From Octopus sinensis (lineage: Eukaryota), in assembly GCF_006345805.1 (NCBI RefSeq), contig NC_043018.1, forward strand, positions 26,226,001-26,290,000: a stretch of DNA of 64,000 nucleotides. Reading direction: 5' to 3'. Shown here in pieces: positions 2,573 to 13,137 of this stretch (the stretch's first letter is position 1; every line of letters begins with the position of its first letter). Both the position numbers and the translations under genes were made by a program. The notes under the pieces were generated by a model. It had not been told where the DNA came from. It worked only from the letters and a program-made list of their open reading frames with translations, and searched no databases.

Positions 2573-2587
2573 CCAGAAATTGGGAAG
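2573..2587 (+). CDS. unc-13: unc-13 15-nt microexon copy A, (A)RNWE(x), phase 1-1
   Basis: ttttctttttccctag|CCAGAAATTGGGAAG|gtattt. Paralogue at 13123 differs only at two synonymous positions; in frame with downstream exons. Confidence 0.7.
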
Positions 2588-5500
2588 GTATTTATTATTT
2601 TGTTCTTTATAAATATCTTGTTGTATTTTATGATGTACTTGCACATTGGTATGGGACTCGGTACCAATCAATGGATAGCTTGGGCTAACTTGTTGAAACG
2701 TCTGGTTGATATTAAAAAAAAATAATAATAAAAGAAAAAAAATTGGTAGCCTTTGATAGTATCAGCTTTTAAATTGTTTGTAGAACAAGAATTGAAATTT
2801 GCTTTTTAGATGTACAAAGTAGTCAGTTTACTTATGTAAGCAGAACAATTGAGAAACAGAGAAATCAATAGGATCATTTCTATTAATGTTACCAGTAACA
2901 TATTTTAATTAAACATGTTGCCTTGTTGCCTTATATGGCACTGCTTGGCCATTTGCATGTTTATATGGCAGCACTCGGCCACTCAATTTCACGAGCAGGT
3001 CATTCCATTGATCGCACCAACTGGAACGCTTGTCAAGTAACCGGTCAAGTGCCAGGCCATGGAGTGTACATTTTTTAAACTATCAACAAGAAGTTTAAAT
3101 TTCTCCATAGTCAGTGTATAATCACCTGCCCTCGTCAATCTGGCAAATAATGTTCTTCTTTTACAATTGACTTCATGGAAGGGCAATTTGTTGTGATATG
3201 ATTTGGAAATGTTACCGTTGCAGAAGCATGTAACTTTAATAACGCGAACAAACGACTATTTAATTGTTTGAAATTGACACAAGTGATTTCTATTCTCTTT
3301 TGTGTATTCAGTTTCAGATGACAATCCATTTGCAATTATTTTCTTTTCCATTTCATTTTTCTGCTGTCATGATCGAAAATAACTGTGACATATATATTAC
3401 AGATGTGTCAGTACAAAGACATGATGCAATGTTGATGTGTTACAACTAAGCAGAAAAACACATATTTTTCTTGTCTATGTATTTATCTGTATAAGTACAT
3501 ATACCTATACATATATGCGTGTGTGTGTGTGGTATATATATATATAATATATATATATATATATATATATATATATATATATATATATATATATGATGTA
3601 TATCATCATCATCATCATCGTTTAACGTCTGTTCTCCATGCTAGCATGGGTTGGACGGTTCGACCGGGGATCTGGGAAGCCAGAAGACAGTACCAGGCTC
3701 CGGTCTTATCTGGCAAAGTTTCTACAGCTGGATGCCCTTCCTAACGCCATATATATGTATGTTTATGTATATATCTATATATATATGTTGTTTATGTATA
3801 TATTATATATATACATATATATATATATATATATATATATATATATATATATATATTATATGCATGTATATGCATATATTATATATAGTATGTATATGTA
3901 TATATTATATATAATATGTATGTATATGGCAGTGCCCCAGCATGGCCACAGCTCGTCGTGAGTTGAACTAGAATCAATCATATGTATCTATACATATGTG
4001 TGTGTGTGTGAGTATATGTATATATATATATATATATATATATATATATATAGATATATACACACATATTCATATCATACCAGAATGAAATTTTTTTGTT
4101 AAGCTTTCAAAAACAAAATCTGAGAGTTCCATTGCTGGGTTTTGTTAAATTTGAAGATTTTGTTGATCTTAATCATGCATTTAAAATCTTTAGTACATTA
4201 TCATTAACAAAAAAATGCAATTAAAAAAAAAAACCATTAAAAAAGAAACAAAAAACTGAAACCTCTTTTCTCCTTTTCTCAATTCACCTTAGCCATTAGA
4301 GTTGTATATTGTCCAGAAATTAGAATTGTTTTAGAACAATTTAGTGTTCGTTAGAAGAAAACTGAGCTGATCCTATGAAGGAATATGTATTAATTATCAT
4401 ATGCTATTATTGTGCTTTGTTTATAGTTGGAGTAATGGTTGGTTAATAATTTGTAGCATGGCTTTATCTTTGCAGTGGGTTTGTTGATATGTTTGACAAT
4501 GGTATCGTGTTTCAAAAGCTATAAGCACTATTAAAGCAATATTAGCATAAAATAATATTGCTTGAGTAATAAACAAGTACACTTGTTTAATGGCTATATC
4601 AATTCTGATCAATTTTTATGATATATTGATTGAAAAACAATCTGTTTAGTGAGCAACATGTATTTTTGTCAATAACTTGGCAGCAACGTTGAAAAATTGG
4701 CTGTTGCATAATAATGTGCCTTTAATTTCTGATGTTATTTACAAATTACTGATATTTTCAAACCAGTGAAATTAGTTTTCATATTATTAAAACATACCTT
4801 TTGAAACACTTCTTGTGACAAATACTATGTATATAAAATTATGGAAAAAATGTTAAAAATGTCACCCTTTAAAAATCTCTTTATATTATTAACAACTTCC
4901 AAAATAATATTTCTTTCTTTTTTTTCCTTTTTTTTGTCTTTTGTCTGATATTAAACAGGATAATCTTAAGAAAACACTAGCTATGATTTATAAAGTATAT
5001 TTGGAAAATGAGATTTAGCAAAGTTATGCAAATACTACAGATTCTTAAGAAAACAAAATTTAAATATCTTAAGGCCTGCAGGAATGATTTTTCTTTCTTT
5101 CATTCTTTGTGTGTGTTTTACATCAAATTCTCTATTGAAATGTAAAAGAAAGCATTTTTATTTTGTCCTTGTTTTGGTTGTTTTTATTTCTTTTTTTGAA
5201 GAAAACCAAAACAATTTCAATGTGACTTGGCTTTTCTCCGTATATCGTTTTTATATCAAGTAAAATAGTCAATTGGAACAACTATAGATTATATGAAGAA
5301 AATGAATGAATGAACAGATAAAAAAAAACTGCAATGCAAGCAAATTATGTTTTATTACTTTTTTTATGTATATCATGTGATATATTTCAATACATTTAAA
5401 GTATAAAATCTTGTAATAAAATATGAAATATTTCCTCTGTTTTTTTTTTGCTTCGTATAATTAGTACAAAATAGTAAGAGTGTTGAGGGTTATTGCCTGT

Positions 5501-6732
5501 AATAACGTTGTATAACCAACAATATTCTCCAAAGAGCATTCAATAAGAAGCTCTCATTGATTTCAACCAGTTGAAAGCAACTGATAAATATGTAAATATG
5601 TAATAGGTTAAGCTATGATGCAACTCTGTGTCTGCAGAGGAGCCGTAAGTGAAGTGCTGTTGAATGATAGCATCATCATCGTAAACATATTTGCAAACTC
5701 CAGTTGCTTTTCCTGTTGCTACACTTAAAGGCTAATCAAAGGGAAAAGCCATTATCAGTTAATTTCAGTGTGTGTGTGTGTGTGTGTGTGTGTGTGTGTA
5801 TATGTATATATATATATATATATATATATATGTATGTGTACAGATATATATGTGTATGTATGTGTATATATATATGTGTGTATGTGTGCATATGTATGTG
5901 TGTGTGTATATATATATATATATAAACTTAGATGAACTTAGATATATTTCGACCAAAGATTGGTTCAGGCCATGTCTAGCTTTATATATATTGAGTATTG
6001 GAAACTTATGAACCCCCAAGAGAATGTCCAATATGGTTGGAATCATGTTAGAAGAGAAGGATTTCTAGTATCTTGGTTTTAGTATCTTGGTTGCTATCTG
6101 CAGCAGACATTATTAGAAGCCTCACAAGGAACTGACAGCACTGCACATATTCCTGCTAACTAATTTGGTCACATTAAATGGCTATCTGTCATAATAGTTA
6201 ATGGTCCTTTTTGCATTAATTCATTTTATAGGTATGCTCAGAAGAATATTTAATTATTTCGCATGGAAAGCCTTTCACAAGTTTTATATTAGACCGATTT
6301 TCTATAAAGATTTATGTGTGTTTGTTAAGTTATCCTGATGTAATCATTTTAGTTTCCCATTTTGGTTATTGTTACAATTTCTTCAGTTTTTTTTTTACTT
6401 CGCAATTGCAGGCAACATTTCTGTTTTGTTTTGTTTAATATTTTTCCATTTAATAATCAGGATTAAAAATCATATTTTTAGGTAAATTACTCCACTACTT
6501 AAAGTATAAAGGGTGAACATTTATATATTAAAATAATGATTCTCACAGCAGTAGTTTTGTTTCCTGTGGTGAATTTTAAAATGTAAGAAGCATTACTGGG
6601 CTTGTGTGAGTCAATATTTTAATTAAAATATGTATTTCTGTATTATGAAATGAAGGCAATATTTCTGTTTTGTTAATTGAAAAGCTTGTTTACATATTAC
6701 AGTTCTATATTTATGAGATGAGGAATTATATG

Positions 6733-12255: not shown

Positions 12256-13122
12256 TTTGATTTAATTTTTTTCTTTCTTTCTTTCTTTCATCCTATTTCT
12301 GTGTAAACCCCTCGCCTCACCCCCCCCCCACTTCTTCATATCTCTCTCTTCCTAATGTTCATCCTCCCACTCCCAGCCACCTCCCTTGTGGCACTAAAAA
12401 GACAAGATCGTTATTGTTATTGCTGTTGTTATAGTTGTTGTTGTTGTTGTCATCATTGTCAGGGCCACTCGTATGATGTTTGCTTAAGATTTTGTTCCTT
12501 GATAAAAACCTAGAGCCATTTACTGTGCCGAGAATCAGAATTGTTGAATTGCAGGAAAAAAAATTTTGTTTTTATTTTTTAATTTTCTTTTCATTTTACT
12601 TTTTACCCCCCCCCCCCCCCACGATTCTTTCTTTATCTGCAGAAGACATTAAAACCGAAAAAATAAAACAACAAAAAAAAAATAAGAAAGAAAAACAGAG
12701 AAAAAGAACTGCCACAAATAATAAAAAAAAAATATATCGATTACTTTTCTTACTATTTGTTGGTCTATGAAATATTGTTACTAAATTTATAACTTTAATA
12801 TATCTCTGTAATTTATGAAGAAAAAGTCAATTGTTTTTCCCCGTTTTTTTTTTTTATTGCATTTTTTTTTTTTTTCCTGTTTTCTAAGCTTTGTCCTTCC
12901 TCTGTGTCTTTTATCTTTTTTTTTCGTTTTCCTACATTGCCTTTGATTACAATAATTGGCTTAATCCGCCCACCCACACCCTGATCTCTCATTCTTTTTT
13001 TTGTTTTTTCACATTCTCACCAATAACAATTATTTCCTATTTAAATTTCAAAACGTCTCCTTCAATTACTATTATGACTGTGATTTTTTCTTTTTTTCTT
13101 TTCTTTTTCTTTTCATCCTCAG

Positions 13123-13137
13123 CCAGGAACTGGGAAG
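13123..13137 (+). CDS. unc-13: unc-13 15-nt microexon copy B, (A)RNWE(G), phase 1-1
   Basis: Long T/C tract ...cttttcatcctcag|CCAGGAACTGGGAAG|gtattt; AGG/AAC here versus AGA/AAT in copy A. Confidence 0.7.

Follow-up and report, generated by a model that had tools for sequence, protein, structure and literature searches.

The 64,000-nt window analyzed here (C22:26226001-26290000, + strand; contig NC_043018.1) comes from the Octopus sinensis assembly (2.72 Gb, 13,516 contigs), and a window coordinate equals the C22 coordinate minus 26226000. It holds two 15-nt motifs that encode the same peptide, ARNWE, within an intron of an unc-13 (Munc13) homologue, and we read these motifs as probable members of a larger array of tandemly duplicated microexons. 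The only long exon-like open reading frame (ORF) in the window, at 55681..55948 on the + strand ((S)GMSEDSDYTSDVNFPVQHQH...SFIND(R); the SEDSDY exon), showed an 86% match to UNC13 of the cuttlefish Acanthosepion pharaonis, and also matched unc-13 homologues of many molluscs with C2, C1 and MUN domains (Pfam domains in the orthologues). A Pfam scan of the SEDSDY exon itself matched no family. On these homologue matches the host gene is an unc-13 homologue, as an earlier note made from the bare sequence had proposed.

A limpet N-terminus used as query against the assembly placed the C2A exons upstream of the window. The last of them (C22:26185966-26186089, +) ends in phase 1 with GAA CTT CCC TAT G^gtaagt (a caret marks a splice boundary), and the next constitutive exon, of 80 nt, is at 26236..26315 (+) and encodes (D)LPEVEAAELQSKLDVLNSIMDQELNQ. 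This DLPE exon starts with ATCTTCCC, encodes DLPEVEAAELQ, and has a phase-1 acceptor (ttctag^AT CTT CCC GAA GTT) and the donor CAG^gtattt; its Munc13-1 counterpart is the beginning of the RIM-binding helix. Both ARNWE motifs are inside the single 66,146-nt intron that runs from the last C2A exon (phase 1) to the DLPE exon. After the intron the exon order is 26236-26315, 30943-30988 and then the SEDSDY exon, where the small exon at 30943..30988 (+) encodes YDSIQDQQRRQTYSQ(S), ends in phase 1 and matches cuttlefish YDSNQDQLRRQTYSQ. The assembled octopus N-terminus aligned with PDB entry 2CJS as far as and including the helix (E 4.9e-58) and with 2CJT (E 8.8e-52); on these matches the octopus gene is of the C2A-containing UNC-13/Munc13 type, with a RIM-binding helical extension after C2A.

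The two motifs, named WE3 and WE4, are candidate 15-nt microexons, both on the + strand and both phase 1-1 (A-R-N-W-E). WE3 (CCAGAAATTGGGAAG; 2573..2587, C22:26228573-87) is preceded by a polypyrimidine tract and TAG acceptor at 2551..2572 (+; aatttgttttctttttccctag; 85% pyrimidine over the 20 nt before AG), in the context ...ttttctttttccctag (tag), and is followed at 2588..2600 (+) by a donor with an AU-rich donor-side element, gtatttattattt. WE4 (CCAGGAACTGGGAAG; 13123..13137, C22:26239123-37) is likewise preceded by a polypyrimidine tract and CAG acceptor at 13101..13122 (+; ttctttttcttttcatcctcag; 95% pyrimidine), in the context ...cttttcatcctcag (cag), and its donor with the conserved donor-side element at 13138..13150 (+; gtatttataattt) matches that of WE3 at 12 of 13 positions. 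Each twin thus carries predicted splice signals of its own; the pyrimidine tracts are the best within the WE family, and the donor, AAG^GTATTT, is of the same type as the constitutive donor at window 26316. Comparison of the two units revealed identity at 13 of 15 positions, with AGA/AGG and AAT/AAC as the only differences. Read in phase 1 as (G)CC AGR AAY TGG GAA (G), both give ARNWE and restore the Asp codon. The differences are synonymous in the unc-13 frame only, the other two frames giving differing peptides, and the chance that two random substitutions are both synonymous is P = 0.021 (0.057 for transitions only). The similarity is limited to about 46 nt, which run from the final stretch of the pyrimidine tract over AG and unit to the thirteenth intron nucleotide; outside this block ungapped identity was 23-41%, which is background for AT-rich DNA. 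The region between the twins contains, at 10700-12300, a CT-rich, strongly strand-skewed low-complexity block (GC content 0.52, GC skew -0.60) composed of degenerate 22-24-nt repeats, which yields long spurious ORFs in several frames.

With 40 kb of intron upstream of the window added, 104 kb were examined altogether. The scan for AG-N(3k)-GTR cassettes of 6-30 nt that are open in the unc-13 frame listed 639, and a filter of at least 80% pyrimidines in the 20 nt before AG together with a donor match of at least 7/9 was passed by six, five of which belong to two sequence families, WE and GYE. One more unit, WE2, was added by a search with the core of the family, and a looser scan for in-frame cassettes ending in W, Y or F followed by E returned exactly the six units. 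In gene order these are GYE1 (C22:26197788-96; acacag^GATATGAAG^gtaggc; 9 nt, GYE), WE1 (C22:26204935-43; ttgcag^ACTGGGAAG^gtatttataaattt; 9 nt, DWE), WE2 (C22:26218652-63; cgaaag^CTGATTGGGAAG^gtatttataaattt; 12 nt, ADWE), WE3, WE4 and GYE2. GYE2 is a 9-nt candidate microexon from the unbiased scan (GTTATGAAG; 16939..16947, C22:26242939-47; phase 1-1, G-Y-E; acceptor ttttttcttttatttttctacag (ctacag), donor gtaagt) and lies inside the window; the other three of the four units beyond the twins are upstream of it. The four WE and two GYE units, all on the + strand and all phase 1-1, are spread over the 66,146 nt with spacings of 11.7, 7.1, 13.7, 9.9, 10.6, 3.8 and 9.3 kb along the intron. They form a tandem exon duplication array, in which the twins are units 4 and 5.

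Unit lengths (9, 9, 12, 15, 15 and 9 nt) are all multiples of three, and all six candidates qualify by size as frame-preserving microexons, being no longer than 27 nt, divisible by three and free of stops in the host frame. TGGGAAG^GTATTTAT is common to all four WE units, while the GYE type follows the pattern GNTATGAAG^GTA. The WE acceptors are located at differing distances from the common donor, yet the lengths stay multiples of three. Across the family, Ala is encoded by GCT or GCC, Gly by GGA or GGT, and the residue before Trp by GAC, GAT, AAT and AAC (D, D, N and N). The WE donors are weak (AAG^GUAUUU, with no G at +5) and are followed by the conserved AU-rich element GUAUUUAU. WE1 alone has UGC directly at the acceptor (C22:26204929-26204934, tttgcag), a feature absent from the other five units; Srrm4/eMIC-dependent microexons typically have UGC at the acceptor. 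Inclusion of the whole set of six would give the linker ELPY-GYEDWEADWEARNWEARNWEGYE-DLPEVE, a gain of 23 residues.

In 100 dinucleotide shuffles of the window there was no match to the 23-nt pattern, even with three mismatches. The 25-nt pattern AGCCAGRAAYTGGGAAGGTATTTAT, allowing up to two mismatches, occurs genome-wide in 2.72 Gb at the two twin sites only, and neither its other strand nor its reversed control gave any match genome-wide. Within the 104 kb, the + strand has four copies of the core TGGGAAGGTATTT and the - strand none. Genome-wide, the 17-mer AYTGGGAAGGTATTTAT has five occurrences, four of them in this intron on the gene strand (reversed control, one), and two of the three matches to the GYE pattern CAGGWTATGAAGGTARG fall in this intron (control, 2+2); off-locus matches of the WE and GYE patterns have no pyrimidine tract. 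Pairwise BLAST of the regions within 1.5 kb on either side of the units detected co-linear similarity at the units alone, which reaches roughly 20 nt before and 13 nt past the unit. Because these flanks are otherwise unalignable, the duplications are old relative to neutral decay, and because the flanks of the twins are unrelated, the pair is not a haplotig or assembly duplicate.

Much of what the earlier note had said of the twins held up in these comparisons. The motifs at 2573 and 13123, with the splice signals it gave, match the window sequence exactly; the shared peptide with only two synonymous differences in the unc-13 frame is confirmed by the phase-1 exon ends on both sides; and the 12/13 donor-side match between otherwise dissimilar introns was reproduced. 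Its proposal of old duplicates under constraint agrees with exon and splice sites that were kept while the introns diverged to saturation, and with a pattern unique in the genome. Its picture of a twin pair, however, stands only in part: both twins are real, but they are not isolated, and the suggested switch between zero, one and two copies is too narrow, since six units are present in the intron.

Transcript evidence came from cuttlefish. A search with a 272-aa N-terminal query found a 446-aa ORF (P0026) on the 2,536-nt Logan contig SRR8281684_24113 (RNA-seq run SRR8281684), which is 99% identical (253/256) over the overlap to annotated A. pharaonis UNC13. P0026 reads ...ILIDARFELPY-GYE-DWE-DLPEKDAVELESKLQ..., and the corresponding contig nucleotides are CCG TAT G^GT TAT GAA G^AC TGG GAA G^AT CTT CCT. 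The two cuttlefish 9-mers, GTTATGAAG and ACTGGGAAG, are identical to octopus GYE2 and WE1, respectively, GYE1 differs by one synonymous base, and the order of GYE followed by DWE in the transcript is the genomic order. Because the cuttlefish 9-mers equal octopus units, the family is genuinely protein-coding in cephalopods, and two units can be spliced in side by side; the presence of GYE and DWE together in one mRNA favours additive over mutually exclusive use. For WE2, WE3, WE4 and GYE2, we infer inclusion in octopus from their sequence features. The annotated A. pharaonis UNC13 models (P0002 and P0003) start at a Met inside the DLPE exon and contain neither the C2A exons nor the GYE and DWE microexons; since they start downstream of the microexons, standard annotation misses them.

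Alignment with the rat structures located the insertion point. The Tyr of octopus ELPY aligns with L131 of Munc13-1, and the units insert one residue after L131. In Munc13-1, residues 129-150 make up an alpha-helix, which a linker connects to C2A; beta-sandwich and helix grip opposite sides of the RIM2alpha zinc finger and are both required, and of the linker side chains only that of L131 packs well against the finger (PMC1472246). C2A switches between an inactive homodimer and a RIM-bound heterodimer, and this switch has been linked to presynaptic plasticity (PMC1472246). The construct in 2CJT stops at E128, and only 2CJS includes the helix. An AlphaFold2 model of P0026, built from a 73-sequence alignment, predicted a confident sandwich to residue 128 (strand 109-128) and a helix at 141-172 (predicted local distance difference test score, pLDDT, about 82), and placed the insert residues 132-137 in the coil between strand and helix (pLDDT 58), where the coil would grow from 6 to 12 residues. 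Judged from the alignment and the model, the insertion point is the linker between the C2A beta-sandwich and the RIM-binding helix; the earlier note had likewise placed the units in the spacer right after C2A.

The same junction was compared, from RFELP(Y/F/L) to D(L/I)PE, in 98 unc-13 homologues in which it could be parsed. There was no insert in 75 of them, among which are vertebrates, arthropods, an annelid and a brachiopod; gastropods and bivalves carry DVVA or EAVA, and GYEDWE was found only in the cuttlefish transcript. In the bivalve Sinanodonta woodiana the last C2A exon ends at the same phase-1 point, and DVVA is encoded by 12 nt that extend the next exon at its 5' end, cttcag^ACGTTGTTGCAG^AT (AC GTT GTT GCAG^AT TTG), with two acceptor-like AGs 12 nt apart (L018 15905-15935). 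This spacing may explain why DVVA is missing from some gastropod models. The 10.9-kb Sinanodonta intron contained no WE or GYE cassette, and no VVA-type cassette was found by the cassette scan of the octopus intron. The DVVA and EAVA inserts share with the octopus units the phase-1 junction after RFELPY and the linker that they lengthen, by four residues; they differ in that they are, in Sinanodonta, an exon extension rather than a separate exon, and in their unrelated sequence. As far as seen in these sequences, the microexon array appears to be a cephalopod feature, at a junction that other molluscs lengthened in another way.

We interpret the twins as members 4 and 5 of six tandemly duplicated, frame-preserving cassette microexons between the C2A exon and the RIM-binding-helix exon of unc-13, and give this reading a probability of roughly 0.7. 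Each unit would be spliced in as a cassette by means of its own polypyrimidine tract and AG acceptor. The combination of weak WE donors, the AU-rich stretch and the tiny exon size suggests dependence on a trans-acting activator just downstream, and in the WE units the element GUAUUUAU may be the binding site of such a splicing activator for tiny exons. Because every unit is phase 1-1, any subset keeps the frame. Additive inclusion would add three to five acidic and aromatic residues per unit, so that the linker would grow by 0 to 23 residues. Since in Munc13-1 the RIM zinc finger is clamped between sandwich and helix, a change of the linker should shift the dimer balance; linker length and composition would, by this analogy, influence RIM binding and move the balance between the C2A homodimer and the C2A/RIM heterodimer, with consequences for vesicle priming and release probability. 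A wider proposal is that cell-type-specific, combinatorial splicing of the six units in the cephalopod nervous system would yield up to 64 isoforms, with linkers that lengthen stepwise between 6 and 29 residues, and would act as a 'rheostat', particular to this lineage, for the switch between Munc13 homodimer and RIM heterodimer and for release probability; it is put forward tentatively, and we regard it as rather doubtful. Another possibility is that the D/N-W-E and G-Y-E modules could act as W-/Y-acidic short linear motifs whose copy number sets partner binding, for example to kinesin light chain. The kinesin-light-chain-binding motif of this type has a Trp or Tyr flanked by Asp/Glu in a disordered segment, with Leu at -2 in SKIP (PMC6214655). 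Under the loose W-acidic definition of that study E-D-W-E and A-D-W-E fit (PMC6214655); R-N-W-E has Asn at -1, and no unit has Leu at -2.

The main live rival to the array reading is that only the GYE- and DWE-type units are real exons, and that the ARNWE twins, perhaps with ADWE and GYE2, are non-coding relics or decoys (pseudo-exons, poison exons, or U1/U2AF landing pads for a 66-kb AT-rich intron) whose similarity was kept by RNA-level constraint or gene conversion. We consider this unlikely, though several observations speak for it or otherwise weigh against the array. The sole cephalopod transcript across the junction carries GYE and DWE and no other unit. Searches for an octopod transcript or protein across the junction recovered with the 272-aa N-terminal query the cuttlefish contig and no octopod; a padded full-length query matched only cuttlefish and other molluscs, a 112-aa junction query gave no match, and an exhaustive representative search gave no further cephalopod sequence spanning the junction. 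Both twins keep an internal CAG 4 nt past the acceptor, which if used would produce an 11-nt, frameshifting exon, and the units split the intron into pieces of 4-14 kb. In addition, the WE2 acceptor is a weak AAG separated from its pyrimidine tract, the synonymous-only statistic for the twins is based on two differences (P 0.02-0.06), and the expected effect on RIM binding is drawn from the rat structure only. Against the decoy reading, all six acceptor-donor distances are multiples of three and open in frame, for which the chance would be about (1/3)⁴ or less if they were non-coding; the twins differ by changes that are synonymous in the unc-13 frame alone and have the strongest pyrimidine tracts of the WE family; and the conserved block ends sharply at +13 and at the pyrimidine tract, as gene-conversion tracts typically do not.

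Dscam and 14-3-3xi clusters consist of tandem homologous exons in one intron with a conserved intronic element beside each, and by that model the WE units would be mutually exclusive, one per transcript, chosen by competing selector/docking RNA pairing. An intronic element does adjoin each WE unit, and one complementary 15-mer (three mismatches) lies 139 nt upstream of the next constitutive exon; about 1.3 such matches are, by estimate, expected by chance in 104 kb, however, and duplex energies of the six units against the 300 nt beside either constitutive exon fell at the 24th-68th percentile of random intron windows. We therefore rejected selector/docking pairing, the energies being no better than in random windows and the complementary match within chance. 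Moreover, Dscam and 14-3-3xi exons are full-size and mutually exclusive, whereas units of the octopus type have 9-15 nt and two of them are included together in cuttlefish mRNA (GYE and DWE, not a pair of WE units), and a choice between twins that encode the same peptide would be pointless at the protein level; mutual exclusion is in our view very improbable. A very long intron with evenly spaced small exon-like units would also suit recursive-splicing intermediates of the Ubx mI/mII type, spliced in and then removed by resplicing with no trace in the mRNA. Such units need to begin with GTRAGT, but they begin with CCAGAA, CCAGGA, CTGATT, ACTGGG and GATATG, only GYE2 begins with GTTATG, itself a poor match to a 5' splice site, and GYE and DWE remain in mature cuttlefish mRNA; recursive splicing was rejected because the unit starts regenerate no 5' splice site, and we rate it less likely still. 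Finally, a twin match due to chance, a dispersed repeat or assembly duplication might be suspected in an AT-rich, repeat-rich intron with low-complexity donor-side sequence. The absence of shuffle matches, the genome-wide uniqueness, the unrelated flanks and the single off-locus matches without pyrimidine tracts rule this out, and we give it next to no weight.

The array reading can be set beside several known systems. A regulated 9-nt unc-13 microexon (VLK) exists in C. elegans and Drosophila, and 6-nt microexons exist in mouse Unc13c and Unc13b; inclusion of the C. elegans exon depends on cis elements in the downstream intron and tunes synaptic transmission (PMC12287369). Like the octopus units, the VLK exon is a tiny, frame-preserving neuronal cassette in an inter-domain linker of the same gene family (PMC12287369), but it is present just once, between the calmodulin-binding domain and C1, whereas the octopus units are duplicated and follow C2A; its motifs, UUAAGUU and GCUUGC, also differ from the octopus element GUAUUUAU. 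Homology between the VLK microexon and the octopus unit was rejected on the grounds of the different site and the unrelated sequence. In avian fast skeletal troponin T, according to PMC7581897 (with reference to Jin and Samanez 2001), up to seven small duplicated 'P exons' with a repeated acidic motif additively lengthen a flexible segment; these resemble the octopus array in being small, duplicated, additive exons within one variable region. They differ in belonging to a muscle gene unconnected with synaptic proteins, in a His/Glu-rich motif, in inclusion as a block in pectoral muscle and in not being spread over a 66-kb intron. Schistosome micro-exon genes share with the array runs of very short symmetric exons, long introns and skipping that keeps the frame (bioRxiv 10.1101/2023.06.21.545858), and in the schistosome genes this skipping produces protein variants, but there such exons make up nearly the whole coding region of small secreted proteins, while the octopus array is a local insertion in a large, conserved multidomain protein. 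In the literature on unc-13, cephalopod and duplicated microexons, we found no description of tandemly duplicated unc-13 microexons or of any microexon at the C2A-helix junction, and one splicing preprint that includes octopus does not mention unc-13.

The window contains further features outside the array. The sequence at 37596-37700 (+) encodes MAGHSLNSSLNSDEHLGQDNLLNCSKETVGRPLPS. In P0154, an octopod-like fragment, this peptide (identical at 34 of 35 positions) forms the N-terminus and is joined by splicing straight to the GMSEDSDY exon; the stretch probably represents an alternative first exon or internal promoter, from which an unc-13 isoform without C2A would arise. At 55877-56079 and 56081-56282 (+) a segment of about 203 bp is duplicated in tandem, with about 93% identity between the copies; it covers the final 72 nt of the SEDSDY exon together with the donor and the first part of the following intron. 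In the second copy an in-frame 75-nt copy (RSDTDSELLYYNSRPNSRPQSFIND) is accompanied by an acceptor-like tatatggtag and a gtatgt donor, and this may represent an additional cassette exon or an artefact of the assembly. A dispersed repeat about 130 nt long, with copies that are mutually 74-86% identical and overlap no microexon unit, occurs at 3620-3750, 16194-16320 (-), 20392-20506, 21219-21326 (-), 21509-21636, 29317-29438, 43363-43489 and 59459-59586; the repeat is probably a short interspersed nuclear element (SINE)-like sequence. An assembly gap of 100 N is present at 52350-52449.

Munc13/UNC-13 is essential for synaptic vesicle priming, and no animal lineage is better known than cephalopods for RNA editing that diversifies the neural proteome. 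If the array reading is true, a duplicated, frame-neutral array set between the two prongs that bind RIM would grade the homodimer/RIM switch by simple genetic means, and would also show cleanly, in a natural case, how microexons arise by tandem duplication. That other molluscs vary the same linker through tandem acceptors suggests that selection has acted on this spacer repeatedly.

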